From assembly GCF_052425735.1 (NCBI RefSeq), contig NC_135770.1, positions 620,001 to 684,000 of the forward strand: a stretch of DNA of 64,000 nt, in the 5' to 3' direction. Both the position numbers and the translations under genes were made by a program. Of this stretch, positions 9,001-32,622 are shown piece by piece. Under the pieces are notes generated by a model. That model had not been told where the DNA came from and ran no database searches. It saw nothing but the letters and a program-made list of their open reading frames with translations. This stretch comes from Oculina patagonica. Taxonomy: Eukaryota. Positions within the stretch are counted from its first letter, which is position 1; each line of letters starts with the position of its first letter.

Positions 9001-12000
9001 GCTCTCGAGATACTTGCTATAAATATTAGAAGCAGTAAAAATATTAAAGGCTTTAAACTTTCAGATAACGAAGAAATTAAGTTAACCATTTTCGCTGATG
9101 ATCTGACGACTTTCTTGAAAGATAAACAATCTTTCGAAAATCTTTTAATAATGTTGCGAGATTTTGGATGCTGCTCGGGCCTTAAAGTAAATAACGGTAA
9201 ATTAGAGGCTCTCCATCTTGGCGACTCGTCCATAAAGCTTGATATCGGTATTAAAAATATGGATAAACCTTTAAAGATACTTGGCATCTTTTTCTCATAT
9301 GATAAGAAGCAAGCCGTTAAATTAAATTTTGATTCAATCCTGGATTCGCTGAAAAAGACTCTTAATCTGTGGAAGTGGAGACATTTAACCATTCTTGGAA
9401 GAATTCAAATTATAAAATCGTTTGCTATCCCTAAATTCCTGTATAGAGCGTCGCAGTTACCTTTTCCAGATGACGTTATCAAGAGAGCGAATACGATCAT
9501 CTACGAATTTATTTGGAAAGGTAAAGACAAAGTGAAAAGACGTGCTTTGATTAATAATATTGAGAACGGTGGATTAAGAATGATACATTTAGAATCCCTT
9601 ATTCAAGCACAGAAGATATCCTTTTTGAAACGGTACTCTGATCCGGAAGATGGTGCCGAATGGAAACATGTTCTCAACTTTTTTCTACAGCCTGTGGGAG
9701 GCCCATACCTCTTAACATGCAATTTTGATTCAAGTTCTTTGAAAATTGCTATCCCCCCATTTTATAACGAATGTTTGACCTTATGGTCAAAATTAAATGG
9801 TTCAATGCCTGAAACAAGTGATGAAATTTTAAACGAAATAATTTGGAATAATAAACACATCTGTATAAATAATAAATCATGTTTTATTAGCGAACTGATG
9901 GATATAGGTATAAACAAAATTGGTGACATTATTAAACTGGATGGGACATGTAAATTTTTGACATGGAATGATTTGCATAACAAAGGTCTTAAAATGAAAA
10001 ACTTTCTTTTGTGGCAAGGTCTAATCGATGCAATACCAGTTAAATGGAAACAAGCTATTAAGTCCACGACAGGTCCTTATATCTTGAACTCGGATTCAAA
10101 TGAATCCACTTTAACTATTAATTCAGTTAAAGTACCCACATCAAAAGTAAATTCCAAAAAACTGTATGCGAGTCTGGTCTCAAGGGTTTGTGAAAAACCA
10201 ACAGCACAAAGGAAATTCGATGAAATGTTCCCTGACCCTAAGCGTGATTGGAGTAAAATATACAGCTTGCCTTTCCAGGTTGCGTTAGATGCGCACACAA
10301 GAGAATTTCAATACAAAGTGGTTAATAGAATCTTATTTACAAATTCTAAATTGTGTAAGTTTGGCTTGGTGGAGTCGCCTTTGTGCACCTTTTGTGGAGA
10401 GGAGGAAGAAACCCCTGAACATTTGTTTGCATTATGTTCTTATTCTAGTGCCTTTTGGAATGAAATTTCCAACTGGCTGCAACAGTGTGTCACTGGAATT
10501 AGTGTTGATTTGTCAGAAGTAGTCAATGTTATACTTGGTTTGCCTGATCTCGAGGAACATTTTATGGCTGTAAACCACATAGTTCTTGTGGCAAAACAAA
10601 CAATTGTACTTTGTAGGAAGAGATCTACTAATCCCAGTTTGAATGTCTTCCATGCTCTACTAAGGAAAACTATTAAAATAGAAGAATTTATTGCTAAGCA
10701 GAAAAATAAATTGCACCTCCATTTAGTTAAATGGGAAAATTTTTTAGATAAACTTATTTAAAGTAAATGTATGCAACGTCTGCCATTTTTCGTTCTTTTT
10801 TTGAATTTATTTTTTTTGTTTTTTTTTTGTTTGTTTTGTTTTTGTTATTTTTGTTATTTTTTTTGTTATTTATTTATTTATTTATTTTTTTTTTTAGTAT
10901 AACTGTTCCCAGAGTAATTGTAGTAGTATTTCAAAATTAAAAATTGTAACTGTAGTGCACCCGTAACTATGTATTTTTTCAAAGTGTAATTGTACTTCAA
11001 ACTTCTGTATCTGTATCTATATCTGTGCTTGTAACTGTATATTTAATTTAATAAAGTATTAAATTATAAAAAAAAAAATCAATAAACATAGTGGCTTTAC
11101 CGCTGCCAGCTTGTGATGTTCGACAAGTCCCAACAAGTCTGAAAATCCTTTCTTTGATCCCTTGAGGTGATAAAATCCAGGTTCAGTGGAGGTATCCCAC
11201 ACAATATCATAGTTCATTACTTTTTCTCCCACGTACACTGACAGAACAAGGTTAAAGTGTTCACTTCGTTTCTTTCGTAGCAAAAAGGAACCATCTTCTT
11301 TGCATCGTTTCAGTAACAGATATTCCCCCAGCTTACGCCTGGAGAAACAAAATTATACGTCAATAATTAATTTGCAGTTAGCTAATTACAAGTCTTCTCT
11401 ACTGACCTGTTTCTAAAGTCACTGACCTGATGTCGCTTGATTTTTTGCCAAATTTGAATACAGTAAATACCAAATTGCATCTTTTTGGTATGCTTCAGGG
11501 ACATCAGGTCTGATTCAGGTCTCACCGTTGGAGTTTTGGCTGAACTATGTTAGGCTAAAATACCAACTGTGGCTTGACCAAACTCGTCTGATATTTCACC
11601 AAAGCACAACAAATAGGTATGATTAGATATATGAAGGAAGATTGAATCCTGTTGGTACCCATCTGTGGTAGCATTGAACTCCTGATCCAGTGGTGGAGGT
11701 TCAATCCCATGTTGGGGTCACTGTGTTGTGTCCTTGGACAAGACAGGAGTACAAAAGGGTACTATAGCTGCAAAAATGTTTGGGGTTACAACCCCCAGGG
11801 GGGTACTTGCAGTATACATGACAGAGGGGGGGGGGGTCCGACGGAGCTTCATATTGCAAACCCAAAAAAATACATGAGCCTGATATTTTACACCCAAAAA
11901 AATACCTGGCATCAAAATTTTCTAGCCCAAAAGGTACAAGACCTAGAACCTCGATACTGATTTATTCAATCAAACAGACTTTAAGACCTATAAAAAAATA

Positions 12001-17740: not shown

Positions 17741-20700
17741 TTATTATTATTATTATTAAAATAAAATTATTTATTTAAATATAATTTGCATACAAACCTT
17801 TTCAAAAGAAAACTTGTGCACAAAGAAATCTTCAGCTCTTTCCAAGGAACTGATATACTGTGATTTAATCTGATCATCTTTTATATTCTCATGCTTTTCA
17901 AGATTTTCGTTAAGAAATGACTTTGTTTCATCAAGAGAATATTCTGCAAATATTCCTCTTTGAAATAGCTTTCTGATGCCATGACGTCCCCTGCAAAATA
18001 AAAATTTGAGAATAGCTAATTAATGATCTAAACCCTGACTATTAATCAGTTGTGGTCCTCTCAATTTCAAAGTACAGTTACTCTCGCATAGCGGACACGC
18101 CGGGGTCATTGGGTGTCCGTAAGCAGTCCCAAGCGGAGCATTCAAGTCAAACCCTTTGTCGGGGATCTGGATTTTGTCCGTAATAGCAAGTGTTCGCAAT
18201 AGCAGGGTGTCCGCAAGGCGAGGGTTGACTGTAATAAATTCATTAAATAGAAATTTCATTTTAATTTATTTACATTTGAAGGGCTCGGTGACAAAAGAAC
18301 TCCAAATTTTGCGTGCCAGTTTGTTGACATTGTGTTCAACATATTGTACTATATTTATTTTCTCTGGCTTCTGTTTCTTTTCCCAGAGAAAATGTATGAA
18401 AATAACTTGGTTTTTCCAGCCAGAGTCTTTAGGAATTTCTTTGTTTGAGCGCAACAAAGGAACTCCAAAAGACTGGCATGGACAAACCGGGTGTTTTGCA
18501 TTCATTTACTTCTCGAAAATGAAGCAAAACCCAGCGGAAATAAAAGCAGGACAATATTTTGCTGACATAAACAAACCTACATGTGAAATTAGGAGTTGTT
18601 TCTGTGATGTTCAAATCACAGCCGCCCTTTTTGCACTGATCTCTTCAATTTATTATTTAAACAATATTACATTTTTAAAACATTACCAGTCACCATTTAA
18701 ACAAATCTAATTAAAATAAAACTTACTGAATCTTTAAAGCTATCCAAGTTATTTATTTATAGTACTTACGGGTTATTAATAACATCTTTGGGGGGTACAT
18801 TCCTTTTTCTTGCCAGATAGATGGTTTCAAAAAGGACCAGTTGTGCCAGATGGTTTTGGTTGTTCTCGCTAAATTCACCAATTTTTCCAGACAAGAAGTC
18901 TTGACGACACTGGAAAGTTAATTAAACAACAACTTACAGTAATATTCTTGCTTAATCCAGCTACTATAAGGCAAGGTCTGTGTTTGAGCCTAGTGGTCCC
19001 TAGAGTGAGTACTGGGGGTGCTTAACTCTGGTTTGTCTAGCATGGAGTGACAAAGGCATATTTTCCCCCACCCATGATGGGATTCTTGTTGATCGCAGGG
19101 TTACCCCCCGAACTGTTAATTTTGTGGTAAACATTTTTAAAAATGCTTTGGTGGAGAGTGAGGCACTATGAACAAGTGTCTTGTTCAAGATTACAACGTG
19201 ATGACCCCACCAAGACACAATCCTTAAAACTGCTCAATAGCTGTTATTGCAGTGGAGCCTGCGATAATTCTTTTGTTAAGTACTGTAGGTATGCAAACAA
19301 GGCGAGAGGGTCAACACATGGGTCAACACAACGCAGAATGGCCCTTTGGCCTTGTTTGTATGTCAAACCGCTGAGAACTGCAAAAATGTATTGATAACAG
19401 CACTGACTATAGGAGTCCATTGCCTCTCTTAACATTACATGAAAGCCCCTTAAAAGAGCCATGATAATGAATAAGACACAAACCTGATGGAAGTAATAGG
19501 CAAATGCTATTTTATCAAAATCTCTGAGCTCCAAGCCATGACAAGCTTTAATGCAGAGTTTGAATGCGTACACTTGACTGCAATCCACCTCACTGAGAAC
19601 CTTGTTTGGGTTCAGAATACAACTGCCATCTTCAGACACCAAGGTGAAAAAATCCAAGCCAACTGGAGAAATGTTGACTTTTAAAGCTGCTTCAGTGCAG
19701 ACATCCTGTAAGGATGGATAGTACAACACATTCAGATTGAGGTAATAAAATAAATATAACAGGACCCAAATTTTTAATCTGTCTGGATGAAAAATGGAAA
19801 ATTAAGTTTAACTTTCAGTTTTGAACTAGGTAATGAACGTTTATTCGTTTGTCTCACAATAGAGTCGCTTTGAGATGTTGATCGCGACGTTTCGACTGCA
19901 ATACTGCTAGTCCTCATCAGGCGATGAGGTCGATTGTTTACGCGTCGCTATTTATGCACGTTGGTTTGCTGTGATTGGTGCATTTTGATCCTCATTATTA
20001 TTCCGACTAACAGATGGTGTTCCCTCATAGGTCCGCTTTGTAGTGGAACGGCTGTTATGCTTTCTGATCGTAGGTATCCATGCTTCAGGAATTTCAATTC
20101 CGCTATCTATATTGATGTTATTAGAATGAAGTCTTTTTTGGATAGCCTCTTTGACCCTGCGTGTGTATCGGTGAGGGTCACGATCGATAAACTTGACTTC
20201 ATTCCATAAAGGAATATGCCCCGTTTCGTTTGCGTGCTCCGAAACTGCGGAGTTTTGTGTATGAGCAAGCCTTATGCCTCTGTCTCTGTTATGTCTCTAG
20301 TGGGCCTTCTGACCCTGGCCTTGTTGTTCAACTTAGGATAGACAAAAATGGAATATACACCAGACAAATCACTATCCAGTGAACAGCACATTCTTTGTTG
20401 ACAACACTTATCTGCTGGATAGCAATTTATCCAATGGATAGCATTATCCAGAGGGTTTATTATACTCTGACTGTTTGGCGGTTTAATTAAGCCAATTTTG
20501 AGTGTCATATTTATCTGGCGGTTTACGGTCAAGAAATTATGGTGGTTTCGCTCTTAAGGAGAAAACAAAATTGAACCTTTTTGTGGTCTAGAAAGAAGAA
20601 AATATAGCGGTTTGCAGAATGCATGACCCCCTAGATTATAGACCCTCTATCCAATCTTTGAAGAACCAGGTCCAGCAGTACTTATATCCCTGGAGGTATT

Positions 20701-22605
20701 GCTAACAGTCTATTGCAAGATGTTCCTACACCCCACTCCACCATAATATATATGAATACAAGTAACCCAAAATAAGAATAACATTGTAAATTTGAAGCCT
20801 TGTTTACTTTGCTAGGTAATATAATAGTTTTCTTGACTAGCTTTTCACATGCACAAATTGAAAGCATGTTTAAATAACTTCCAATAATATTGTGAATGCA
20901 TGGTATGCATTCTACAATGTAGCACATACCCAACTGAAAGTTTACATTTAAGAATTACCCTAAGAGCCAATGAGCCATAATATAGTCTGAACCTTAACGT
21001 TTGGCAAGTTTTAATTTTTTTCTCATTTCTAAGAATTTCTTTTGATTGACACATGTAAGTCACGTGATATCACTTATTAATAAGAGCTTTTCTAGGAAAA
21101 GACAGGTGACACCTGAGATTTTTTTGGCAAACATTTACTCAATACCCCCTCTAAGCTCTGTCTATGTAGATGCTACCTATTGCCTGTATGCAGGGATGGT
21201 CATTCATCATCGGTTCTATTAGCATTTCTAGGAACCCGAATAAAGCCACTATGATTATTAATTCGTTTTTCCGGGAATTAATTAATGATGCAAATCTATT
21301 GTTAAGGCCATCATAACATGACCTCTTATTCACTTAAGTCATTGACTGCCAAGTCATCTTGACTAGCCTGATGAGAAAAATGCTAGACAGTTTCTATTAG
21401 AGTTACAGTTCATGAAAACTTACTAGATTTACACTTTATAGTTTCTTAAGTTTGTTACTGGTAAAACTAAATTTATAAAAAGAACACATTAGAGACTTAG
21501 ATAATGAGCAGCTCTTACATAGATGGGAGCTCACTATTTATTTTCAACAAACGATCACTTTCGAAGCATTTGCTAAGGTTTTTGGTCTCAAGCATACCCT
21601 TCATTATTATATACACAAAGAGGTTTCCTAGAATTGCACTCTCATGTTGTTCCAAGAAGTAACTTTATCACTCATCTTTCAAGCAAAGTTTCAAGTTATG
21701 AAACTAAATAACATACCCTGGGGATTGAAAAAATATATCTTAACAACACTAAAACACGAAAATATAATGACTGATCCATATGACATTATTGTATAGTGCT
21801 TTGGTATTCATGTTTTGATACATACTTTGTTCAAGCTATATATGTTGCTTTACTGTTAAAAACCCCACAAGAAAAAGATCAGTAAATAAGATAAGAATTG
21901 CAGAGAACACAACTCCAATGCGAACTAACTAAAGATAAACAATAACTAGCTTTACCGCTTGTCAAAATCTTTCATATGAAAAAGTTAGTCCATGCGAACT
22001 GTGCCCCTACCGCTGTCTTTGATTGATTAATAACACACAAACGTAAATTAAAGCTAACAATTGCAAATAAAACACTAAAAATACCTAAAACGTCACAAAC
22101 TCAAACACAAACTTTTTCTTTACTAGCTAGCTGGTACAAGAAACTTCCATCACACAGAAGACAGCATGTTGTTTAGCGCTAGAAATGCGGGGTTTCGAAG
22201 GCAATATATCTTTCAATTCTCAGGCAATATATCTTTCAATTCTCAGAAATTTATAACGTGAACATGAATTATAGACACGTACACTTAGTAAGTTGACGAA
22301 TTTATGTGTTATATAAAGACGTAAACTCTTACTACTCATGAAATAGATTCGGGCGAAACAGCGACTGATTGTGAACTAAAACGAAACCTAAAAAGCGCCA
22401 TTTCTATTTTGTAGAAAGCAAAAATGCAACTCACCCTAACGCTCAAGTTAGGACGGTAGACGAATTTCAAGACTTCGTCGGTTGATGCAAAAACAACTGT
22501 ACCACTTCCGTCTTTTGAGAAAGACGATCGAGTCCAAGGCCATTTTCTGTTCGTACACGCTTCTCTTACACGTCTCCAAACTCCGGGACCGCCATTAACA
22601 CCCAT
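22..22605 (-). CDS. JAK: Janus kinase (JAK)-like protein: FERM + SH2 + JH2-type pseudokinase; 3'-incomplete (continues past the left edge)
   Basis: 20 GT-AG exons with compatible phases give about 793 uninterrupted codons: 22605-22435, 19705-19484, 18909-18770, 17990-17798, 17072-16986, 13790-13689, 13291-13192, 12550-12508, 11338-11101, 7896-7848, 7356-7235, 6782-6678, 6003-5846, 5471-5387, 5037-4901, 3870-3720, 3119-3076, 2796-2736, 2147-2096, 140(or 146)-22. JAK-typical motifs: YYFHQCRQDFLSGKI, KSQYISSLE and EADSLITLIEGYYRL (FERM); CHGPIS...GSFLLR...DGL (SH2); GEFGEV, FKEAM, EFAAEGPLDQYIK, HGRLNAHN, KISDFG and SDIWSFGVTLWEM (kinase fold). Confidence 0.9.
422..1870 (-). mobile_element. 3' end of an L2/CR1-type LINE, interrupted by a MITE
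   Basis: The minus strand at about 1715-1805 reads EGFFFIRATRLWNTLPNFLKKSESLHCFKN, matching the WNxLP...SL..FK C-terminal LINE motif. A (TTGAA)n-type tail lies at 422-443. Confidence 0.6.
576..1633. mobile_element. Non-autonomous DNA transposon with long (~140 bp) terminal inverted repeats
   Basis: CACTCCTTCTTATTAAAGCGTGAACAC...TCGGTCACGG (576-~705) is the reverse complement of ~1509-1633. Both ends are flanked by TA. Confidence 0.85.
4466..4846. mobile_element. Kolobok-like MITE (TTAA TSD)
   Basis: TTAA|AGGGGCTAGGTCACG ... CGTGACATAGCCCCT|TTAA. Confidence 0.8.
6148..6521. mobile_element. Kolobok-like MITE, same family as 4466-4846, opposite orientation
   Basis: Starts TTAA|AGAGGCTATGTCACGCAATTTTAGGC. 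Its internal sequence is reverse-complementary to the 4466-4846 copy. Confidence 0.75.
6890..7175. mobile_element. MITE family TAGAGCAGTTTTCA...TGAAAACTGCTCTA (copy 1)
   Basis: Short TIRs. Near-identical copies at 33440-33723 and 38162-38428. Confidence 0.75.
8034..8422. mobile_element. Kolobok-like MITE (TTAA TSD)
   Basis: TTAA|AGGGACAGTTTCAC ... GTGACACTGTCCCT|TTAA. Confidence 0.75.
8690..11077 (+). mobile_element. 5'-truncated non-LTR retrotransposon (L1/Tx1 clade), antisense within JAK intron 9
   Basis: 15-bp TSD ATCAATAAACATAGT at 8675-8689 and 11078-11092. AATAAA at 11050-11055 and an A-tail at 11068-11078. T-rich 3' UTR. The RT reading frame is open from the 5' junction. Confidence 0.93.
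8740..10761 (+). CDS. LINE ORF2 fragment: reverse transcriptase plus C-terminal zinc-knuckle (zf-RVT)
   Basis: Motifs IDFEKAFDSL, GVRQGDPLSPYLF, FADD, KILGI and CTFCGEEEETPEHLFALC. No stops. The endonuclease domain is absent because of 5' truncation. Confidence 0.9.
   Translation: MSYTKVNDLSGLLVAIDFEKAFDSLDWAFLNKALLAFNFGESFIKWVSTFYCNIKSCVTNNGFSSVHFDVKRGVRQGDPLSPYLFIIALEILAINIRSSKNIKGFKLSDNEEIKLTIFADDLTTFLKDKQSFENLLIMLRDFGCCSGLKVNNGKLEALHLGDSSIKLDIGIKNMDKPLKILGIFFSYDKKQAVKLNFDSILDSLKKTLNLWKWRHLTILGRIQIIKSFAIPKFLYRASQLPFPDDVIKRANTIIYEFIWKGKDKVKRRALINNIENGGLRMIHLESLIQAQKISFLKRYSDPEDGAEWKHVLNFFLQPVGGPYLLTCNFDSSSLKIAIPPFYNECLTLWSKLNGSMPETSDEILNEIIWNNKHICINNKSCFISELMDIGINKIGDIIKLDGTCKFLTWNDLHNKGLKMKNFLLWQGLIDAIPVKWKQAIKSTTGPYILNSDSNESTLTINSVKVPTSKVNSKKLYASLVSRVCEKPTAQRKFDEMFPDPKRDWSKIYSLPFQVALDAHTREFQYKVVNRILFTNSKLCKFGLVESPLCTFCGEEEETPEHLFALCSYSSAFWNEISNWLQQCVTGISVDLSEVVNVILGLPDLEEHFMAVNHIVLVAKQTIVLCRKRSTNPSLNVFHALLRKTIKIEEFIAKQKNKLHLHLVKWENFLDKLI
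11680..12235 (+). mobile_element. Degenerate SINE (same family as 14381-14650), split by a MITE
   Basis: GGTTCAATCCC...CACTGTGTTGTGTCCTTGGACAAGAC lies before the MITE and CATCCAGGGAGAGTAGAAAATACT...GAAAACCG after it. Confidence 0.55.
11794..12110. mobile_element. MITE with CCC(A/G)GGGGGGTACT termini
   Basis: TIR CCCAGGGGGGTACTTGCAGTATACATGAC / GTCATGTATACTGCAAGTACCCCC..CTGGG. Direct repeat TTACAACC at 11786-11793 and 12111-12118. Confidence 0.8.
13892..14372. mobile_element. hAT-like MITE
   Basis: TIR TAGGCTTTTGTACATTATGC. 8-bp TSD GTTGGGGG at 13884-13891 and 14373-14380. Subterminal CTAAAATGCTC repeats. Confidence 0.85.
14381..14650 (+). mobile_element. SINE (tRNA-derived, conserved core)
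   Basis: GTTGTGTTCTTG...AAGACACTT...CCAGGTGTATAAATGG...CCTGCGATGGACTAGCATC...GGAGTAGAAATACTCC. Related fragments at ~5710-5815 and ~19000-19215 (minus strand). Confidence 0.65.
14880..16296. mobile_element. 1.4-kb non-autonomous TIR element with CAT...ATG termini
   Basis: Perfect ~30-bp TIR CATTACATCTCCGCGCCGGTTTAAATGTGT at both ends. CpG-rich interior. No clear TSD. Confidence 0.75.
17455..17759 (+). mobile_element. tRNA-derived SINE with (ATT)n tail
   Basis: A-box-like TGGCGCAGTGG, B-box-like GGTTTGATTCT, body ATGTGGGTTGAGTTTGTTGTTGGTTCTC...TTTTCCTCCCTCC, and an (ATT)n microsatellite at 17701-17759. Confidence 0.85.
18075..18231. mobile_element. Tc1/mariner-type MITE (TA|CAGT...ACTG|TA)
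   Basis: TA|CAGTTACTCTCGCATAGCGGACAC ... GTGTCCGCAAGGCGAGGGTTGACTG|TA. Confidence 0.65.
19840..20271 (-). mobile_element. Penelope-like element 3' fragment (GIY-YIG endonuclease C-terminus plus hammerhead)
   Basis: The minus strand at ~20271-19953 reads LAHTQNSAVSEHANETGHIPLWNEVKFIDRDPHRYTRRVKEAIQKRLHSNNINIDSGIEIPEAWIP..., followed by a hammerhead core. Confidence 0.85.
19881..19925 (-). ncRNA. Minimal type I hammerhead ribozyme (PLE-associated)
   Basis: ATCGC-CTGATGAG-GAC(loop)GTC-GAAAC-GTC-GCGAT: stem I ATCGC/GCGAT, stem II GAC/GTC, palindromic ACGT stem III. Confidence 0.75.
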
Positions 22606-23390
22606 TCTTAGAGCATCTCAGCATTTCACGGCTGAACGTTTTACGAAGACTCGCGTTAATCGCCGTTTTAAAGCAGAATTTCATTCCGAGAATCGCCTCT
22701 TTCCAAGAAACCATTCGTAATCGATAATCAAAAGAGCTAAAATCTGTCAGGCGTCACTGGGGCACTTCCTCTTGGCCGAGTAACGAAACGAAAGCAACTG
22801 GATCGAAATTGCTACCAACCAATCAAATTTCAGCGCATAAATTTGTAAGGGACGGGGAGGGTAGGGATTTGTTTTGGAGAAAACTGGGTTGAAAATAACG
22901 AATTTTTTCCTTCGGACAACGAAACCAACAGGTTTTGGATCATTTGTAGTAAAAGCAGTCTCCCTTTTCGAGTAACAGACGAAATTACCGGGTTTACTCG
23001 CGAAAGAGGTTTTTGCAAAGCATAAATTTTTGACCTGATGAGGATTAGGCCATAGAGGACCACGGAGGGGGAGGGAAAAATTTGGTGCGAAAGCAATGTA
23101 AATAATTTCTAAACTCAACGAGCGTGATTACTGAGAAATAAACGTGATCAATACACACAATAGAGCTAGTTTCCGAGAAATATTACTGCTAATAAACTGT
23201 CCACCTCTCTGTTGCATTTATGGATAAGGTACACGTTTGCATTCTGTTAGCCTAGAGGGGGTACTGAAGCAATACTTGTCAAGAATCCTAAGCCAATTAA
23301 TTTGCACCTGTTATTTTCTTAGAAAAACCATTACCTGGAAGCTCAGGGTCACGTGACCGAATGCCAATTGGTTCTCGCCAATTCCTAGAA
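21027..23390. promoter_or_regulatory. Cluster of 12 STAT-type GAS palindromes (TTCYNRGAA) spanning the JAK promoter and first intron
   Basis: Sites start at 21027, 21090, 21226, 21269, 21625, 21650, 22240, 22684, 22701, 23171, 23316 and 23382. Confidence 0.7.
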
Positions 23391-23682
23391 AAGACAAAAA
23401 TATCATTGCATATTTCATGACAATAAAAAGACTTGACTGACATTTGAAGTTCAAAACAATTCAATCGATGTCAAGAAGACATCAAACCGTTTATCAACAC
23501 TCTACTGAATGATTAATCTTGGCTTTCGAGCCCAAAGATGCGAGTTACAAATTGAAAAATTCAAATTTAGTTTGCATTACGTTTCTATTTCGACGAAGTC
23601 CCGAAAGAACGTCAGATTACGAGCTTTGCAAACCAGTTAATACAGAGGCGACCCTCCCGTAGAGACAGCTGGGGTATACTTT

Positions 23683-24753
23683 ATGTCCCACCCAATTTTG
23701 CAGGTTTAAAGAAACGACGACGGAAAGACTCTTTCCGCAAGAGAAGGATTGTGTCGCGACAATTTTTGATGGTGGAGCGAATTCCTTCAGGATTAATTAA
23801 TAAAAAAGGCCTACGTTACTTCATCGAGCAGATTTGAAGATATTTTGTAGATAACTAGTGTCAGGAGACTGGATTTGCCGTTTTTCAGCCATTTCGTTGT
23901 TTAACCGAATAATGTTAGGGAAACTTAACCTGTTCTGAATTGTTAACTAAAACAAACTGCTAAAACTGCTTTAGCTCGTGGTTATAGTATGACTGAATGA
24001 TGCAACCATCCAGTAAAAGTACTAGCCGTATTCGTATGATCTCGCAATTTTCCTAGTACCGAGAAAATCGTGACGAGATTCCGTCCCTGCAGCAAGCGAG
24101 TAGCTCAAGAGTAAACTTCCTCAAGTCCCACCTTCACGAGGTGGGGCATACCGTAGAATTCCGGTTTTAAGCCCCCCCCCTTATAACCCCCCCCGTTAGC
24201 CCCCTCTTCCTGAAAAAAAAAAAAACACTTTACCCCCCCTATCCCCCCCCCCAAAATATTTTTTTTTTTTTTTTAATAAAAAATTTTTTCCCCCCCCCTC
24301 TTTTTTTTTTTTTTTTCCCCCCCCCCCCCCATAAACCCCCCCACCCCCCCAAAACCCCCCAATTATACCGGCCAATATGTCCTACCCACTTTTGCAGGTT
24401 TTAAAAAATGGCGACGGCAAGAGATGGATTGTGTCGCGACAACCTTTGATGGTGAAATGAATTCCTTCCCGGGATTCCTTCTGATCAATGAATAAAAAAA
24501 GGCCTACGTTTCTTCATAGATCAGATCTGGCAATATTGTGTAGATAACTACTAGGGAAAATCACCCTGTTTTGAATTGTCTAAAACTCAGTAAAACTACT
24601 GTAGCTCGTGATCAGTATACTACGAATGATGCAGTCATCCAGTAGAAGTACTAGCTGTACTCGCATGATCTCGCAGATTCCCTTTTACAGGAAATCGTGA
24701 CGAGTTTCCTTTCCTGCAGAAAGAGAGTTGCTCAAGAGTTAACTTCCTCAAGT
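23683..24753. repeat. Diverged direct duplication (~23683-24125 vs ~24377-24753) separated by a homopolymer-rich stretch
   Basis: Shared blocks ATGTCC(C/T)ACCCA..TTTGCAGG, GGATTGTGTCGCGACAA, AATAAAAAAAGGCCTACGTT, GTAGATAACTA and TCGTGACGAG...AACTTCCTCAAGT. Confidence 0.75.
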
Positions 24754-25799
24754 TGTGTGATGGTTCCCAGTAAAAGTCCAGTTTCCATCTCTGTCCCGAC
24801 AGCGAAAAACCTATCATCACACAGGCTCGTCAAAAAGGCTCTGAAAAACTCGAAGGCTTTAAATTTAATTCGGGAGAACGGGCCCGGTTATCTACCTTTT
24901 CAAGGGCAAGAATATTTTCACTCAGGTGCTTTTCTCAGGCGCACTACTGGCATACGATTCTGAATGAGTTATCGGTAAATGTTATGGAGATGACGTGGAA
25001 CGCAGTTTCTTACAGACACAGAAATGAAACTTATTGTTGTTTAAAACAAAGTTTGAATTATGCGCAAGCTCCCATAGGCTAAAAGCCCCGTTTTATCAGT
25101 ACAGCGTTTTCTCAATACGCACCTGGCACCTACCATGGCGAACTGTCAGTATTTTGTTCAATAAAACATAAAAAATCGCCGTGTTTTACTGATTGTTTCG
25201 CCAAAGCCGTGTATTGTACTGTCAAACCACTTCGGGTTTCAAAACAGTAAATATACTTGCTTATGTGGCTTGGCCTCGGGGACAGTTATAAGTTACTATT
25301 TCTTGATACCAGGTGATCTACTTGTACTCGACCTTCTTAATACGGTTAAATCCAATAGCAGCTGAGTTTATCCAGAACATAGATGTAAAAAGCCTTAAAA
25401 GTTTGCTTACTTACAGTAAAAGTCTTTTTTCTAGAAGTCTCTTTTGTTTGAGTTTTAAGCTCTAGGAGAACTATTACCGGTTATTAAAAATGATAAACTC
25501 GCGGAACAACTTCTAGGAAACTGATACAATTTTCTGAATCCATCGAAAACTACTTCCTTGTGCAAGATAAACCACCATTTGTAAAACGATATTTAATTCA
25601 TCATTGGAGAGGAAAACTTCCGCAAAACGAATAACAACAAAAAAATTGCGCACAAATTGGCCGGTAAAAAAAAAAAACTTCAATATTTATAACACTAGAA
25701 CAATGTGTTTTTTAACTAACTGTTGGCTTTTAAAAAGAAAGGGTTGTAAACAGGAGAGTCCTGTCGTAAAATAAGGAAGATAAAAAGCTTACGGTTTAA

Positions 25800-26263
25800 A
25801 GTGCACCTAACCCCCGAAACAATACATTCAAAATTGATTGTACATGAGTTAGAGAGTTGAATGGTTAAATATTTCTTCATCTCAATGTTGCGTTTTTAAG
25901 TTATGAAGGTTTATTTTTCCAATATGTTAATGAGTATGACGTCTACCCAGTCTTCATTCAATATACAGATTTTGACTGGTTCACACAAACAGTATCTAAA
26001 AAGCATTATCATAATACTCGCAATTTCCACAATTTTTATTGTAAATTTGGTGTCTGGTTATGGCGAGTAAATAATGATATAAGCAAAACAAGTATGCTTT
26101 AAAAGCCTGGGTAGACGTCATACTGATTAACATATTGGAAAAATAAACCTTTTATAGCTTAAAAACGCAACATTGAATTGAGATGAAAAAATATTTAACC
26201 ATTCAACTCTCTAACTCATGTACAATCAATTTTGAAAGTATTGTTTCGGGGGTTAGGTGCACT
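25800..26263. mobile_element. TTAA-flanked foldback MITE with ~155-bp inverted arms
   Basis: TTAA|AGTGCACCTAACCCCCGAAACAATAC...GACGTCTACCCAG and its reverse complement ...GTTAGGTGCACT|TTAA. Confidence 0.85.
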
Positions 26264-26356
26264 TTAAAAACTTGCATTTTGATGATAGACCAGAGAGAGA
26301 AGGAAAACACCGAAAATTTAGCGTTTTTTAAAACTTAGATCGGATGAATCATTCTA

Positions 26357-26784
26357 CAGTGGAACCCCGATATAACGATATGTCAAGGGAGCAGTAAAAT
26401 AATATCGTTATATCGAAGAATCGTTATTTTGAAACTCCCGGTATGATGTAAAATAACCGAGAATATCGTCATATCGGGGTTAACCTAACAAGTAATTTTT
26501 ACTGCCTATTAGAGGAGGATAAAGAAAATAATTTTGATAACAAGGCTTAGAACACAGTATCATTTTTGTATATCATCGTTCAAAGCTGTTTTTAGAAACG
26601 TTAGAGATGAATCGATTAATTCGATGTTTTGCAAATAAAATGTGACGGTGTAGTGATAATATCGTTATATCGGGAGGATTTTACGTTCGGTCCGCTAAAT
26701 TCTCATCGTTATATCGAGAATATCGTTTTATCAAATATCGTTATATCTGGGTTCCGTCCCATACATTTTAGACCCATTTTACTG
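26357..26784. mobile_element. Tc1/mariner (pogo/Tigger-like) MITE
   Basis: TA|CAGTGGAACCCCGATATAACG start, repeated ATATCGTTATATCG motifs, ACTG|TA end. Confidence 0.65.
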
Positions 26785-27426
26785 TAGTAAAATTTAGTCT
26801 ACCGATCGCCACAGAAAAAGGTAGACCAGAGGTTAACGTCAATTTTACTGTAGGCCATTTAATTTGCACAGTTACTTATGAGAATGGTTTCTTTTCAGTC
26901 CGTTTTCATTTGAATGTAGTTGTCGTTTGTTTGTTATCTACAATGGGTAGACCACTTGATGCTACCCTTGAGAATTATTTCTTTCAAATTCAAACAAATA
27001 GGCCATTTCCGAGTTACCTTTCGTCTCCGTTAGAAACGAGGCTACGTGCGAAACCATTCAAATGAAAATGAGTTTCACCTTCATGTTCATTTTCATGCAA
27101 ATCAAATTCATTTTCATTACGTAGCTAAAGAGGTCTATTCAAACTCAGTAAATTTTGATTCGTTTGACAACGGTTTGTTTTGAGAAATATTTGCCGTGCT
27201 CGTCTTCAATGTTGTACAAAGCAATCTTCGCGTATTCTCTATATCCCAGAGTTCTCGATTTAAAGTAAAGCACAAGCCGGAAGCATAAGCAAAGAGACGA
27301 ACCCTCAGGGTGGATGAAGCCAGCTACAATAGCCACTCCACTCTAGTCAAGAGCTTATATTCCTTATATCTGGTGGGTAACGATATCGATCCTTTGAACA
27401 ACACAGCCTGGGGTCGAAAATGAGTA

Positions 27427-27870
27427 CAGTCAAAGCTCTCAGCTCTCATAAGCGGACACCCTCGAGACGCGAAAAAAGTGTCCGCAACTGGAGCTGGCCG
27501 CTTACGAGAATGGTTCTTGTAAGCGGCCACTAGAGGTGTAGGGGATAGATGGCCGCTTACGGAAGCTTGCCCAGCTAACATAATGGTATTAGAATATGCA
27601 TGTTAGTGGTGTTTCAAAATGTAACCGGACGTGGATGACGACAAAACAAACACTGAAATATGGTACTGTAATTACAGTAAAATCATTGTGACGAACGGCG
27701 ATGTGAAGTTAATTGATTAATACAAGATACAGGGGTTTTCTATATTATTTTCTTAAGAAAAAGTCTAAGTCGTAATCTCGGAAAGTGTCCGCGGCCGCTT
27801 ACGGGAATGTCCGCTTACGAGAATGTAAAAATACAGAGTTTGTATGGGAGTAAAAAGGGGTTTCTAACAA
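27427..27870. mobile_element. Tc1/mariner-type MITE, related to 46110-46592
   Basis: TA|CAGTCAAAGCTCTC...ATAAGCGGACAC...GGCCGCTTACGAGAAT, reverse-complementary to the 46.1-46.6 kb copy. Confidence 0.65.
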
Positions 27871-27916
27871 GTTTATATCTTCTGTTGTGTCGTCTAATTT
27901 GTTTCATGAAAGTGAA

Positions 27917-28546
27917 GCGCATGCGTGCGAAAATGTAGCCTTACAAAATTAAGAAATAATTGATCGATCTACGCTTATTTATAAAATCGCCACGAGCCCC
28001 TGCATTAATAGATTCACCTTTTCGCGTGCAAAAAGGTAAGGTTTCCTGTAGAAATAAAATTGTACAATTGGGAATCTGAACATATGCAAATTTGGATTTG
28101 CCCGCAGTCATGCAGAAATACATTAAAAATATATGGCCAAAATCTCTAACAAACACATCACCAACTTCTGGCTTTGGAAAGCGCATTCTTAATGACTCAG
28201 TATATTCATGCAGTTAGTAATATAAAATGTTAAAATATTCAGAATTAAGCCACAACTTTACAGACAGCTTCACAGTGTGAAACGTTTCAGCTGGCGTTGT
28301 CTGTTCTTTTAATATTTGCAAATTTTATTCACGTGCCTAAAGGTGTTCTTGTAAATTGATATTTTCTAGCTTGTTTTCCTTGGAAAAATGGCTGAGAGGT
28401 ATTTAAAGTACTTTAAGCCTACGGCTATGAAAAGTACGCTATTAAGGGTATTATAAAAATGAAGTTCCTTGATCAAGCATAACCCTAGAAATGTAAATAT
28501 CAAATTTTCTTAAGCGTGTCAATTTCATTTTCGATTCTGCACCTAG
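27917..28546 (+). promoter_or_regulatory. Putative promoter, non-coding first exon and 5'-UTR intron of the glycosyltransferase
   Basis: GCGCATGCG (NRF1-like) at 27917; TATAAAA at 27980-27986; donor AAG|GTAAGG at 28036; pyrimidine tract plus CTAG| acceptor at 28546, 48 nt before the ATG. Confidence 0.5.
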
Positions 28547-28594
28547 GTCACGCAATCATTCAGAAGCTTCCGCCAAGCCGGTACCGAAGTGGAA

Positions 28595-30178
28595 ATGCAT
28601 TTGGTGTTAGTACATGGATATTTACTGGGTGGCACAGGCTCCAATGTCTACACAGCTAACATTGCGAAATCTTGGAAGCGTCAGGGCCATGCAGTGACAG
28701 TACTCTGTCAGGATCCCTTCGCCGATCGCCTCGATTTTGTCGACGAGTACATAGTTGGAAACGACAAGATTCCGTCTTCCGCCCCCAAAGCCGGTACCAT
28801 TCGAGTGGTGGTACCGGACATCAATGGGCTGCTGCTGGTCTACTGGTACGATCAGTATGAAGGATATGAAGTAAAGACCATGGTGAACTGTACTCTGGAC
28901 GAGATCGAAGCAAATATCAAGGGAACGGCAGATGCATTGAAGAAGGTGATCGCTCAAGGTGTCGATCGAATTCTCGCGAATCATGCGATCCTGAGTCCAG
29001 TGATAACGAAACGCGCCACGGAAGGCACCGGGATTCCTTACGATGTGAAAATACACGGCAGTTCCATTATCTTTTGCGTCAAAAATCGTCATGAGCTGAG
29101 ACGCTACGCTTTGGAAGGCATCAAGAACTGTCGCAAGCTCATCGTGGGGGCAAAGTACATGGCGAGCTTCGTACAAGAAACATTTGAGGCGGAAAAAGAA
29201 GAGATGGGGCTGCTGAAAAAGACCGTCATTATTCCCCCGGGAATGGATCCTGAAGTGTTCCAGTTCGGTAGATCTATCAGCGAAAGGCAAGAGGCGTTTT
29301 TGGAGAGCGTGAAGGAGTTTATTAAGAGAAAGCCGGGCGGTAGGCGAGCTGAGAACATTAAGCTTCCGGATCACGCAACGCGTGACCTAAACAAGGCGCT
29401 GGGGAGAGTTGTTGAGTCCTATGAGCTTCGAGCCGCGGATGCAGACCTCTGTGAGCGCTGGATCCCAGTGGAAGAAGACGAAGCTATTATTTGCTTTTTT
29501 GGCAAATTCCAAGAAACCAAAGGAGTCGGTGAATTGTTAATGGCATTTGCGACCATCGTCGAGCGTTTTCCCAGGGCGCGGCTGCTACTGATCGGATATG
29601 GAGGCAACCGTGAGCACTTGGAGGGGATGTTAGCAGCGATGATTCAGGGCAATTTTGAAGCATTTAAGGCGTTTGCAGAAGCAGGGAACTTCGTGGACCT
29701 TCCACAAGAAGCGGAGAAGTATTTCCGCAAGATTCCTGCAGGAAGAGTTATGATGACCGGCCTACTGGAGCACCCGCAGTTGAAAGAGATACTTTCACTG
29801 TGCAGCATTAGCGTCATGCTATCCAAAGCCCTCGAGTCCTTTGGTATGGTCTCAGTAGAAGCCATGTCCGCCGGCGTCTTGCCCTTGTGTCATGACCATA
29901 CAGGAATCTCAGATGTTATAAACACCGTCCAGGAGATTGACCCCGAGTTAGGAAGTATAATGCGCGTGGGGATACGTCCCGGTGGCGTACATGGCGTGGC
30001 AGATGGTGCGTATTTGGTGGAGCAGTTACCCAGTAAGGTGGAGAAAGCTCTGAATTTTCTGTATCCTAACGGCTTCTGTGATCACACCAAGCAGCGTGAG
30101 GTGTCCACCCAGCTGAGGTCTGTCGCAGTGGCCAAGTTTTCCTGGGATGTTATATGCAAGAGCATTCTAGAAGAATAA
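28595..30178 (+). CDS. GT-B fold family-4 (Glycos_transf_1) glycosyltransferase, intronless CDS, bacterial-like
   Basis: 527-aa ORF from ATG 28595. N-terminal HGYLLGGTGSNVY, FFGKFQETKG, the E-x7-E motif ESFGMVSVEAMSAG, and C-terminal FSWD. ATTAAA at 30247. Confidence 0.88.
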   Translation: MHLVLVHGYLLGGTGSNVYTANIAKSWKRQGHAVTVLCQDPFADRLDFVDEYIVGNDKIPSSAPKAGTIRVVVPDINGLLLVYWYDQYEGYEVKTMVNCTLDEIEANIKGTADALKKVIAQGVDRILANHAILSPVITKRATEGTGIPYDVKIHGSSIIFCVKNRHELRRYALEGIKNCRKLIVGAKYMASFVQETFEAEKEEMGLLKKTVIIPPGMDPEVFQFGRSISERQEAFLESVKEFIKRKPGGRRAENIKLPDHATRDLNKALGRVVESYELRAADADLCERWIPVEEDEAIICFFGKFQETKGVGELLMAFATIVERFPRARLLLIGYGGNREHLEGMLAAMIQGNFEAFKAFAEAGNFVDLPQEAEKYFRKIPAGRVMMTGLLEHPQLKEILSLCSISVMLSKALESFGMVSVEAMSAGVLPLCHDHTGISDVINTVQEIDPELGSIMRVGIRPGGVHGVADGAYLVEQLPSKVEKALNFLYPNGFCDHTKQREVSTQLRSVAVAKFSWDVICKSILEE

Positions 30179-31010
30179 GAATAGACCAGTTCACGGTTTT
30201 TCCCCCACTCTTTTCAAAAAAGTACAAACATGGTGAAAAGACAATCATTAAATGAGAATCAGATGTCGAAAAACTCTTTTGGTAAAATTTTAATTTCCGC
30301 AATTTTTAAAGCCTTTAAACTGAAGAGACCTAGAGAAAGATGATTACTAATTTTAAATTTTTGAAACACAAGAGTACTTGGAAACGTGTAGACGCGTTTT
30401 TTTTTCGTGCACGGCTAAGCCAATTCGCGTAAAACTAATAATTGCAAAGCAATATTATGAAACGCATACAAACAGTGTATAATGTACCATGTTTATACTT
30501 TTAAAATGAGAAAAAAACAGCAAAATGCCCTTTTGCAGTCAACACAATCAGGGTAGCTAAAACTGTTCTAAATACAGGACTCAAAATATATTCTCATTCA
30601 AATTACTTTAATTTTTGTTGGTACCTTTGGTCCGAGCCTGTATAAATTTTCGTTAGGTTAGTTTCGTCAGTCAGGTTAGTACGTGACGTATGCTAGGTCA
30701 ACCACAATGTCATTTCAAATGTTATACAAATGTTATACATTTTTATCAAAATCATGTCTATCAAAACATATATATCATTCTTATTTCTGTAGTTAAATAG
30801 TTAGGTCAATTTGTGAATATAGGGTATAATAGTGACTCGGGAGTGGTTAATAAAGATTTTTTTATACTTGGGCAGAAAAATAATTATAGTGGATTTTCTG
30901 ACATTACGGTCTCGTGGTTGCTGGCGGATTTAGGTTAGAAGCCCGGGTTTCCCACACTCCTTTTGCTGAAAAAATCACCCACCCCTATTGACGGAAAAAT
31001 GATACACCAG

Positions 31011-31431
31011 CCCGGGGGGGGGGGTACTTAGGGAAATTTTTGTTGGGTATGTGCCGCTGGCCTCTCAGAACCCCTATCCCATTATAGTCTTATTCTATGG
31101 CCAATTATAGTCCCCATCTTAGTCACTTTTGGGTAAATTTAATTTTTACGACCCCAACTTAGTCACTTTCTGGGAGCTGTTTGTCAAATATTGAACAACA
31201 GCAATAAATACGGTAACATTTTTTTCGGCGAATATTTCCGTTCATAAATCACAACTTGCCAGATTTTCGTACTCTCAAAATCCCGGAAAAGTGAGACCCT
31301 ATTCTAGTCACCCTATAAAAAATGCTTGAAATGGCGACCCCATTATAGTCAGTCCAGTCGTGAAAATGCGACCCCATCCAGCGGCACATCCCCATTAGCC
31401 CATTTATAGGAAGTGCCCCCCCCCCCCCGGG
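31011..31431. mobile_element. MITE with CCCGGGGG...CCCCCGGG termini
   Basis: CCCGGGGGGGGGGGTACTT ... AAGTGCCCCCCCCCCCCCGGG, with near-direct repeat (T/C)ACACCAG on both flanks. Confidence 0.75.
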
Positions 31432-31818
31432 CACACCAGCAGTCAACCCTCTCCATCTTGCCTCCCCCCTCCTGAGTACCTAAGAGTCAGCCACTGGCTA
31501 ACGCGCGCGGTGTAAGTTCTTCTCATCCTAAAATCCTAAGAACTTCAAACAAGTCCTGACATTCCTGGCTTTGACTGTTTACAGCGTTTCTATTTTCTCA
31601 GATCATTACAAGTATAAAGAGTAGAAGGCGAAAATCATGTGCGAAGCGAGCCCCAAGTACAGATACGACAAATTTCAGACAGGGTACATAAAGTAGTTTC
31701 CTTCTCCTGCGAGTACGATGACGTTGGTGCCTGCAGGCTCACGATAAAGTTTTGACAACTCGGCGTCGTCGGCGTCACTAACGACTCGCTGAATAAGTTT
31801 GTAAATTTTATTTGAGGC

Positions 31819-32622
31819 ATGGCGTTAGGTCGGTCAAAATTGCCTATGTTTGTAGCTGTAGTCTGCTGTGCAGCCATTCCGTTATTCTTCATCGTCAAGA
31901 GGGCTTCATTAAATGGAGGATACACGCTGTGGTCTGAGTGGGGAGCTTGTTCAAGTGAATGCGGCGAAGGAATCCGCATAAGAACCAGAACGTGCACAAG
32001 TCCTTTACATGGAAGATTCGGTAAAACTTGCCTTCAACAAAACCTTGGACAACCGCAGGAAGAGGAAAAGTGTAAAATCAAAGAATGTCCCATAGACGGA
32101 GGATTTACGGACTGGAGTGAATTCGGCGAATGTAGCAAAACTTGCGGAAACGACGGCGTCAAGAAACGAACCCGAACCTGCACGAATCCGCCGCCACAAT
32201 TTGAAGGCAAACCCTGCGAAGGTCCCGCAGAAGATACGCAGCCTTGCAACATTAAGCCTTGTCCAATAAACGGCGGCTTCTCCGAATGGGGAAGTTTTGG
32301 AGATTGCGATAAAACTTGCGGATCCGGTATCAAGAAAAGAACGAGAGCTTGTTCAAACCCATCGCCAGCTCACGGAGGGAAGAACTGTGAAGGGCCTGTT
32401 GATCAAGTCGAAGAGTGCAACACGGAACCCTGCCCGGTTGACGGCGGGTTTGCAGATTGGTCTGAGTTTGGAAGCTGTAGTAAGTCCTGCGGCTCGGGTG
32501 TACAGGCGAGGAATCGAACTTGTTCGAACCCGGCTCCGTCGAATGGAGGCAAAGACTGCGAAGGACCTCTGGAAGAGACAAAGGAATGTAACACAGACCC
32601 TTGTCCACCAGCTGCTGCATAA
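31819..32622 (+). CDS. Thrombospondin type-1 repeat protein (4 TSRs, coadhesin/ectin/hemicentin-like) with N-terminal hydrophobic signal or anchor
   Basis: 267-aa ORF. Hydrophobic MFVAVVCCAAIPLFFIV, then four (D/N)GG.xxWxx.xxCSxxCGxG...RxRxC..P.P..GG..C.G...E...C....CP units. Possible 5'-UTR intron at 31512-31601 (GTAAGT...TTTTCTCAG). Confidence 0.9.
   Translation: MALGRSKLPMFVAVVCCAAIPLFFIVKRASLNGGYTLWSEWGACSSECGEGIRIRTRTCTSPLHGRFGKTCLQQNLGQPQEEEKCKIKECPIDGGFTDWSEFGECSKTCGNDGVKKRTRTCTNPPPQFEGKPCEGPAEDTQPCNIKPCPINGGFSEWGSFGDCDKTCGSGIKKRTRACSNPSPAHGGKNCEGPVDQVEECNTEPCPVDGGFADWSEFGSCSKSCGSGVQARNRTCSNPAPSNGGKDCEGPLEETKECNTDPCPPAAA

Follow-up and report, generated by a model that had tools for sequence, protein, structure and literature searches.

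The window analysed here is a 64,000-nucleotide stretch of the genome of the coral Oculina patagonica (NC_135770.1, positions 620,001 to 684,000; coordinates below are those of the window unless another contig is named). It contains an uninterrupted open reading frame (ORF) for a bacterial-looking glycosyltransferase of family GT4. How did such a gene come to lie in an animal chromosome, and what might its product do? A first-pass annotation, made from the sequence alone, had implied a recent transfer from bacteria into the coral. The explanation that we consider best for the whole, at a probability of roughly 0.7, is that the ORF is a functional, single-copy GT4 gene of ancient bacterial origin, the product of which would transfer a sugar from a nucleoside diphosphate (NDP)-sugar to a shared small acceptor. 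One part of this is held more firmly, namely that the coral gene has been inherited vertically since the ancestor of stony corals and sea anemones and is neither a coral-specific acquisition nor a contaminant.

The ORF runs from 28589 to 30178 on the + strand. Its ATG at 28595 is taken as the start codon, since the residues MHL(V/I) open every ortholog. The 1.58-kb uninterrupted coding sequence (CDS) of the first-pass annotation was recovered as an intact ORF of 527 residues, and its three motifs were located at residues 7 (HGYLLGGTGSNVY), 303 (GKFQETKG) and 414 (ESFGMVSVEAMSAG). The CDS and its principal features are as follows.

28595..30178, + strand: single-exon CDS, 527 amino acids plus stop (ORF, Pfam, AlphaFold2 model, single copy, dN/dS)
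28613..28651, + strand: N-terminal glycine loop HGYLLGGTGSNVY, residues 7-19 (H7, G8, G15 and S16 invariant; profile alignment)
29270..29479, + strand: mostly helical family-specific insertion between the Rossmann domains, residues ~226-295 (secondary structure of the AlphaFold2 model; boundaries approximate)
29501..29524, + strand: GKFQETKG motif, residues 303-310 (K309 invariant; profile alignment)
29834..29860, + strand: E-x7-E motif E414...E422, the retaining-GT4 signature (both glutamates invariant in 66 sequences)

Enzyme class and catalytic motifs

Pfam searches returned Glycos_transf_1 (PF00534) at 67.6 bits (cut-off 26.4, E = 1.3e-18), a match to Glyco_trans_1_4 and weaker matches to the GT4 N-domain (Glyco_transf_4). 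An AlphaFold2 model was generated from an alignment of 66 sequences spanning ~27-86% identity to the window's protein (pLDDT 95.5, pTM 0.90). When this model was aligned to solved GT4 enzymes using VIA-align, Z scores lay between 31 and 27 (BshA, GlgM, PimB', HepE, MshA and SPS). Superposition on 2jjm gave Z 31.1 with a root-mean-square deviation of 3.1 Å over 348 residues, and in all ~350-400 of the 527 residues superpose on the solved enzymes. The remainder includes family-specific additions totalling ~130-170 residues, at residues ~226-295 and ~339-385 and in long C-terminal helices.

Foldseek ranked a Leishmania SPS-like protein first, followed by MshA, and the top 30 fold matches in Swiss-Prot were without exception bacterial or archaeal enzymes. 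Fold searches of the PDB, Swiss-Prot and AFDB clusters yielded generic GT4 enzymes with no specific functional assignment, and a feature search of the ESM Atlas yielded generic bacterial GT4 clusters only. The family profile matched the cyanobacterial SPS Tll1590 best within the PDB (E = 2.7e-22); a PDB sequence search with the single protein reached E = 4e-4 only.

Across the 66 sequences H7, G8, G15, S16, H130, H154, S156, K309, E414 and E422 are invariant. The stretch TGSNIYV of the glycine loop is aligned by profile on GGQNIYV of Tll1590, and this loop appears to correspond to the GGxNVY loop of SPS- and MshA-type GT4 enzymes. By analogy, K309 would be the counterpart of the GT4 lysine to which diphosphate binding is ascribed, while E414 and E422 align with the EX7E motif of BshA, SPS and GlgM. 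As judged by these alignments, the donor-side catalytic signature (glycine loop, K309 and E414-x7-E422) is complete.

The GT4 assignment of the first-pass annotation is therefore upheld by a Pfam match above cut-off, by the GT-B fold and by both K309 and E414-x7-E422. From its sequence and predicted structure, the protein is a GT-B-fold, retaining-type GT4 glycosyltransferase of an uncharacterised subfamily, for which retention of anomeric configuration is predicted. A Kyte-Doolittle scan of the 527-residue protein found no 19-residue window above 1.35, and residues 2-6 form the first Rossmann β-strand of the model. Given this low hydropathy and the N-terminal Rossmann strand, there is no sign of a transmembrane segment or signal peptide, as had been proposed at first pass, and the enzyme is probably soluble and cytosolic.

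The first-pass annotation had also set the protein apart from the usual animal GT4 enzymes ALG2, ALG11, PIGA, GTDC1 and GLT1D1, and here too it proved right. Family-specific N-terminal Pfam domains include ALG11_N, PIGA and the GTDC1 N-domain. The five enzymes have the same CAZy family and the same fold as the coral protein, but none of their specific Pfam domains was found in it (E <= 0.1), none of them is among the top 30 Swiss-Prot fold matches, and the coral protein is without a membrane anchor.

Acceptor and possible function

Identity to any characterised enzyme is at most 20%. With SPS (Tll1590, PDB 6kih; the Leishmania SPS-like protein, 8vrf/8uag), the coral protein shares the GT-B fold, a GGxNVY-type loop, the K-G motif, EX7E and, probably, a soluble cytosolic state, and SPS provides the longest superposition with the coral model (401-404 residues, Z 27). 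However, identity is only 15-19%, the coral protein has the ~130-170 family-specific residues, and it possesses neither a sucrose-phosphatase domain nor such a partner (no other Pfam domain was found, and no conserved neighbour around 25 + 56 bacterial loci). BshA, GlgM and MshA are structurally closest by Z (30-31, 28.7 and 27.4, respectively) and all have small anionic acceptors. In BshA the HG(S/T) acceptor-side motif aligns, with HGTD standing against KIHGS in the coral family. These three enzymes are nevertheless ~150 residues shorter than the coral protein and no more than 20% identical to it, and their NCBIfam models score far below cut-off where matched (BshA, TIGR03999, 47.7 bits against 273.7; MshA, TIGR03449, 22 bits against 462.5). 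Among 19 NCBIfam matches no equivalog came near its cut-off, and no SPS model was present.

A cross-domain alignment of 20 sequences from bacteria and animals contains 42 invariant N-domain positions. Between bacteria and animals the acceptor-side N-domain is conserved to the same degree as the donor side, which suggests an acceptor common to bacteria, protists, sponges and corals; the conservation of acceptor-side residues from Desulfobacterales to corals would imply a shared metabolite. In the proposed mechanism, a sugar would be moved from an NDP-sugar to this shared acceptor with its anomeric configuration retained. By analogy with SPS, MshA and BshA we tentatively favour a small, possibly anionic metabolite as the acceptor, short of even odds, because SPS, MshA, BshA and GlgM use small, mostly anionic soluble acceptors and because KIHGS resembles HGTD. 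The reaction could yield a glycoside that serves, for example, as an osmolyte or protective metabolite. Speculatively, the marine-only distribution of the family is compatible with such a glycoside, and the compatible-solute synthesis mooted in the first-pass annotation is possible.

Two sets of observations weigh against a small soluble acceptor or fail to help it. Firstly, conserved operon partners were sought around 25 close and 56 distant bacterial loci, and only lineage-level synteny was found. The neighbours comprise an exonuclease, SAICAR synthetase, a radical SAM protein and an M50 peptidase in the close clade, and cytochrome oxidase and CCA/poly(A) polymerase in the distant clade; as these are housekeeping genes, they offer no clue to a pathway. 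Secondly, some protist homologs carry a C-terminal PH domain, a fusion that points to membranes and fits a lipid acceptor better.

The enzyme might accordingly be an amphitropic glycolipid synthase that glycosylates a membrane lipid, in the manner of PimA, alpha-monoglucosyl-DAG synthase, DGD or SQD2. Besides the PH fusions, this would agree with the presence of PimA, PimB' and the Acholeplasma MGlcDAG synthase among the structural matches, and with the gene standing alone in bacteria, lacking a partner phosphatase. The best profile and fold matches have soluble acceptors (SPS, BshA, MshA and GlgM), however, and the coral protein has no PH domain or hydrophobic segment. Both of these objections are weak, and we regard a lipid acceptor as somewhat unlikely.

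Distribution and descent of the family

Full-length orthologs of the coral protein occur in stony corals (Orbicella, Pocillopora, Porites, Acropora and Desmophyllum; 76-96% identity) and in the sea anemones Exaiptasia, Actinostola and Nematostella (55-58%). A large clade on Mb-scale contigs, at 50-53% identity, has one cluster that includes Amphimedon queenslandica A0A1X7VLC7, and one locus of this Amphimedon-containing clade is flanked by SH3/tyrosine-kinase and Ig/fn3 exons. Lingula, Owenia (two copies) and a cluster with Hydractinia (two genes) have full-length homologs at 44-48% identity. No named matches from plants, fungi, vertebrates or ecdysozoans were present among the matches listed.

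Homologs at 49-51% identity that have either a PH domain at the C-terminus or two GT4 units in tandem are assigned to protists because the members of their clusters come from EukProt and a marine eukaryote catalogue. PH-domain homologs are P0067 (677 residues; PH at residues 578-675, E = 8e-13), P0072, P0330 (1139 residues) and P0314 (1124 residues), and some of the long protist forms are tandem double GT4 proteins. A further homolog, P0123 (46% identity), lies at 10001-11590 of L086, a 45.1-kb JGI metagenome contig of 32.5% GC. Positions 1-21590 of this contig carry a Capsid_N ORF of the nucleocytoplasmic large DNA virus type (30.6 bits), along with an F-box ORF, 2OG-Fe(II) oxygenases and a fusion of DHFR with thymidylate synthase, and ORFans are found on both strands. 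The Capsid_N ORF, the DHFR-thymidylate synthase fusion and the many ORFans together mark the contig as giant-virus-like.

The closest bacterial homologs (~517 residues, 45-48% identity) are on plainly bacterial contigs, beside the nuo operon or an MCP gene. A scan of prokaryotic genomes, with one genome per species, found nothing when queried with the single protein; an alignment-based scan was required and gave 335 relatives confirmed by tblastn. The close clade is represented by the 24 best loci (46-70% identity to the bacterial query) among ~185,000 species representatives. Its metagenome-assembled genomes are labelled Desulfobacterales/'Deltaproteobacteria', Calditrichota, Marinacidobacterales and other Acidobacteriota, Planctomycetota, Gemmatimonadota, Victivallales and Melioribacteraceae. 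The close relatives are a rare clade of marine-sediment bacteria. A deeper clade, at ~30-34% identity, consists mainly of Solirubrobacterales and other Actinomycetota.

A maximum-likelihood tree of 63 sequences was computed using IQ-TREE (LG+C20+F+G4 by PMSF), with the distant bacterial clade serving as root; support values are UFBoot/SH-aLRT. The eukaryotic sequences, together with the giant-virus-like ones, form a clade (94/93) that is sister to the close bacterial clade (94/92), and the two are separated from the all-bacterial outgroup at 100/100. Anthozoa are recovered at 100/98 and the anemone plus stony-coral group at 100/99, with a branching order inside Anthozoa that resembles the species tree. 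Anthozoa and the Amphimedon clade group together (98/95), as do Hydractinia, Lingula and Owenia (100/100). PH-fusion protists are placed between these two animal groups. A FastTree tree of 156 sequences and a quick tree of 69 sequences agree with this topology. The first-pass description of the protein as bacterial-looking was well founded, in that its closest non-eukaryotic relatives and all of the deeper relatives are bacterial.

On this topology the subfamily would have arisen in bacteria and entered eukaryotes in a single ancient event that preceded the divergence of its present-day carrier lineages. One bacterium-to-eukaryote transfer is the most economical account, because every deeper relative is bacterial and most eukaryotes lack the crown family. 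The coral copy has come down by vertical inheritance from the ancestor of stony corals and sea anemones at the latest, and probably from the earlier one that they share with the sponge-containing clade.

Several points count against so simple a history. The Hydractinia, Lingula and Owenia sequences stand apart from those of Anthozoa and sponges, beside the giant-virus-like sequences P0123, P0357 and P0124. A tree constrained to a single animal clade is worse by 14.3 lnL units (approximately unbiased (AU) test, p = 0.0146), a result that is moderate since the group was chosen after the tree had been viewed. Support from the sequences for vertical descent within animals would extend to Anthozoa, or to Anthozoa plus sponges, only. 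The sponge label itself depends on a single named member together with one contig of animal-like character, and a cnidarian-like clade is placed by the tree only. The root, furthermore, sits on a long branch of 1.2-1.5 substitutions per site, so that the direction of transfer depends on the bacterial outgroup and not on a nesting of eukaryotes within bacteria. A wide eukaryotic distribution of orthologs in keeping with the species tree had been named at first pass as grounds for rejecting a transfer; the orthologs are indeed widespread, though patchily so, while the animal phylogeny is not followed (AU p = 0.015).

The lineages outside the corals offer some further observations. The Nematostella ortholog (L087:10001-12024, OW051996.1) is split after residue 359 by a single canonical intron (phase 0, GT..AG, 410 bp), and the gain of a spliceosomal intron argues for long residence in an animal genome. 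A dynein heavy-chain gene of the same strand encloses this ortholog, and the order of a JAK-type gene, the glycosyltransferase (GT) and a thrombospondin-repeat (TSR) gene seen in the window is not kept there. The Hydractinia genes LOC130645475 and LOC130645474 (P0338, P0351) and the Owenia copies (P0116, P0352) are lineage-specific duplicates. The two Hydractinia genes are likely to be adjacent, as their locus numbers are consecutive; the Owenia copies are on different chromosome-scale contigs, and one is fast-evolving, with a terminal branch of 0.88. Two ancient animal paralogs were considered by way of this second Owenia copy and rejected, the copy being a lineage-specific duplicate.

The reverse direction would make the gene an old eukaryotic one that was mostly lost, acquired from a eukaryote by a rare marine bacterial clade and then spread among phyla. 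The two crown clades are reciprocal sisters, with the animal sequences inside the wider eukaryotic and viral clade and not nested in the bacterial one, as this history would allow. The bacterial clade is also rare (~24 of ~185,000) while covering at least 7 phyla, which suggests lateral spread, and the identity between bacteria and animals (45-48%) is no lower than that between the two animal subclades. Nonetheless, the deeper relatives are all bacterial, including a clade at ~31% identity (Solirubrobacterales and other Actinomycetota); two inter-domain transfers would be needed as against one; and the matches listed include none named as plant, fungal, vertebrate or ecdysozoan. We therefore consider a eukaryotic origin quite unlikely, and retain ancient entry from bacteria as the preferred account.

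A fuller version of ancient entry can be entertained, though as a whole it is unlikely. An early marine eukaryote would have captured the gene once from marine bacteria, after which vertical descent and spread between eukaryotes, possibly borne by giant viruses, would have left the making of a cytosolic glycoside shared by sponges, cnidarians, protists and bacteria of marine sediments and absent from most bilaterians. If true, the gene would mark an unrecognised piece of early-animal metabolism. Once known, the product might uncover a glycoside pathway specific to marine life in animals of early-branching lineages, and the homologs in protists and on a giant-virus-like contig provide a testable route for eukaryote-to-eukaryote spread.

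Bacterial-derived GT4 genes have a precedent in cnidarians. The GT4-conflict family comprises single-exon genes of bacterial derivation, of which Acropora digitifera is reported to have more than 500 paralogs (Kaur et al. 2021, PMC8195603), and the O. patagonica genome contains at least 61 full-length, stop-free, single-exon PF20706 genes (277-320 bits, profile positions 2-385; 113 candidates). This known expansion is missing from the list of animal GT4 enzymes in the first-pass annotation. The coral gene could be thought a member of this immune-effector expansion, being likewise a single-exon GT4 gene of bacterial type in the same genome and having a weak PF20706 match of 20.6 bits; the PF20706 family is itself bacterial in origin (PMC8195603). 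That match, however, falls below the 26-bit cut-off and covers the EX7E region only (profile positions 274-327 of 385), far from the 277-320 bits of true members, and a genome search with the coral protein matches only itself (E <= 1e-5). The gene is, moreover, single-copy, slow-evolving, conserved from sponges to corals and free of immune-domain fusions, whereas a lineage-specific expansion would show the reverse. Membership is thus very unlikely indeed. The PF20706 genes form tandem clusters outside the window, on C4 (~13.8, 29.7-30.2 and 49.9-50.2 Mb), C9 (~1.57-2.19, 11.5-11.7, 14.9-15.1 and 23.2-23.4 Mb), C8, C14, C12 and others of the genome assembly (G000).

Public orthologs of the coral protein are annotated 'uncharacterized protein' or 'Glycosyl transferase family 1 domain-containing protein'. 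The six listed are full length and 52-91% identical to the window's protein: Orbicella faveolata XP_020627833.1, Pocillopora damicornis XP_027047658.1, Acropora digitifera XP_015751272.1, Nematostella LOC116613958, Exaiptasia LOC110243861 and Amphimedon A0A1X7VLC7. The literature covered, subscription journals lying outside it, held no description of this GT4 subfamily and no listing of it as a candidate for horizontal gene transfer. Bhattacharya et al. 2016 (PMC4878875) describe 41 such candidates in corals; in the main text of that paper the string 'glycosyl' appears only in an unrelated passage on galaxin. The gene encodes a conserved, uncharacterised enzyme of early-branching animals with a patchy presence in bacteria, protists, a virus-like contig and animals; its mechanism holds no surprise, and bacterial GT4 genes in cnidarians have a precedent.

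The recent, coral-specific transfer from bacteria implied at first pass draws on an intron-less gene lying between multi-exon genes and on bacterial homologs that are 45-48% identical over their full length. Against it, orthologs occur in five named coral genera, three anemones, the sponge-containing clade and other animals, all of them closer to the coral protein than any bacterial sequence is; the anthozoan subtree resembles the species tree; and the Nematostella copy has acquired an intron. Composition also speaks against it. The first-pass annotation had described the CDS as richer in GC and CpG than its flanks. The GC content is indeed higher (0.50 against 0.33-0.39), but the observed/expected (o/e) CpG ratio of the CDS, 0.94, does not exceed that of the immediate flanks (1.19 upstream, 0.96 downstream). 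The adjoining thrombospondin-repeat exon (31819-32622) has an equal GC content of 0.50 and a similar CpG o/e of 1.0, which contradicts an alien composition: because this adjacent animal exon is equally GC-rich, the GC bump is an ordinary exon signature in the coral genome. In the O. patagonica genome an intron-less ORF with a GC bump is, by itself, no evidence of recent transfer. Of the horizontal transfer that had been proposed, the bacterial-type origin stands, and a recent or coral-specific event is extremely unlikely.

Integration of the gene in the coral chromosome

The neighbourhood and the probable transcript of the gene are described by the following features.

28571..28594, + strand: probable short 5' untranslated region (transcript-like contigs of three runs start at 28571-28581)
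30179..30871, + strand: probable 3' untranslated region (X8 record 30 covers 30397-30871; X2 record 21 extends to 30484)
30849..30854, + strand: AATAAA polyadenylation signal, from sequence, ~20 nt before the ends of transcript-like contigs
19247-19729, - strand: FERM_F1 exon (JAK-type), flanking gene, domain match
31819-32622, + strand: ORF with 4x TSP_1, flanking gene, domain match

A genome search with the protein matched only its own locus at E <= 1e-5 (G000 C13:648595-650175), indicating a single copy, and the identical protein is recorded on a 38.3-Mb contig. In two other stony-coral genera (L089 and L088) orthologs at 86% and 81% amino-acid identity have the same neighbours, with the order FERM - GT - TSP1 in L089. 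Of the gene order that the first-pass annotation had suggested examining in other coral assemblies, the JAK-GT-TSR part is therefore kept in two further genera. Between coral genera the CDS alone is alignable, at 77% nucleotide identity. Pairwise ratios of nonsynonymous to synonymous substitution (dN/dS), a second check suggested at first pass, were 0.081, 0.085 and 0.063 (dS 0.9-1.8) and reveal strong purifying selection.

Transcript-like contigs from three runs (X1, X2 and X8; three studies, three related organisms) span 28571/28581 to 30484/30871 with no joints inside, and depth is ~0-2 at 27904-28455. Their value for an expressed gene is lessened in that the runs are called RNA only by automated guess and come from related species, not from the sequenced individual. 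The contigs nevertheless point to a single-exon mRNA of ~2.3 kb. In a DNA-like run of another organism, one contig crosses 27843-30298 at a flat depth of ~14-18, like that of the flanks. From these sequence comparisons, we conclude that the ORF is a functional, single-copy animal gene, integrated in the host chromosome. That the locus is bacterial DNA brought into the coral chromosome by contamination of the assembly or by a chimeric join, for which nothing speaks beyond the bacterial look of the protein, has next to no probability, given the same JAK-GT-TSR neighbourhood in two independent assemblies of other genera, an independent DNA-like contig that runs from the upstream flank on into the CDS with the depth of the flank, a eukaryotic AATAAA signal with transcript-like contigs limited to the gene, and a highest bacterial identity of 48%.

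Minor rearrangements and repeats were observed around the locus. L088 keeps both flanks, but between them the GT gene has the opposite orientation with respect to JAK and TSR (L088:2418-17124 against window 22416-32606), and the TSR exon block is present twice (2418-3168 and 7472-8173). In the window, an ORF of 673 residues with RVT_1 and zf-RVT domains (8740-10761, + strand) represents a retrotransposon copy, situated either in the region of the JAK-like gene or upstream of it. Segments 26984-27903 and 31032-31583 are very high-copy repeats, with summed contig depths from thousands to ~150,000 in all four runs. Approximately 430 bp near 31000-31430 would be an insertion absent from one of the sampled organisms (organism D), since its contig joins 31000 straight to 31430.

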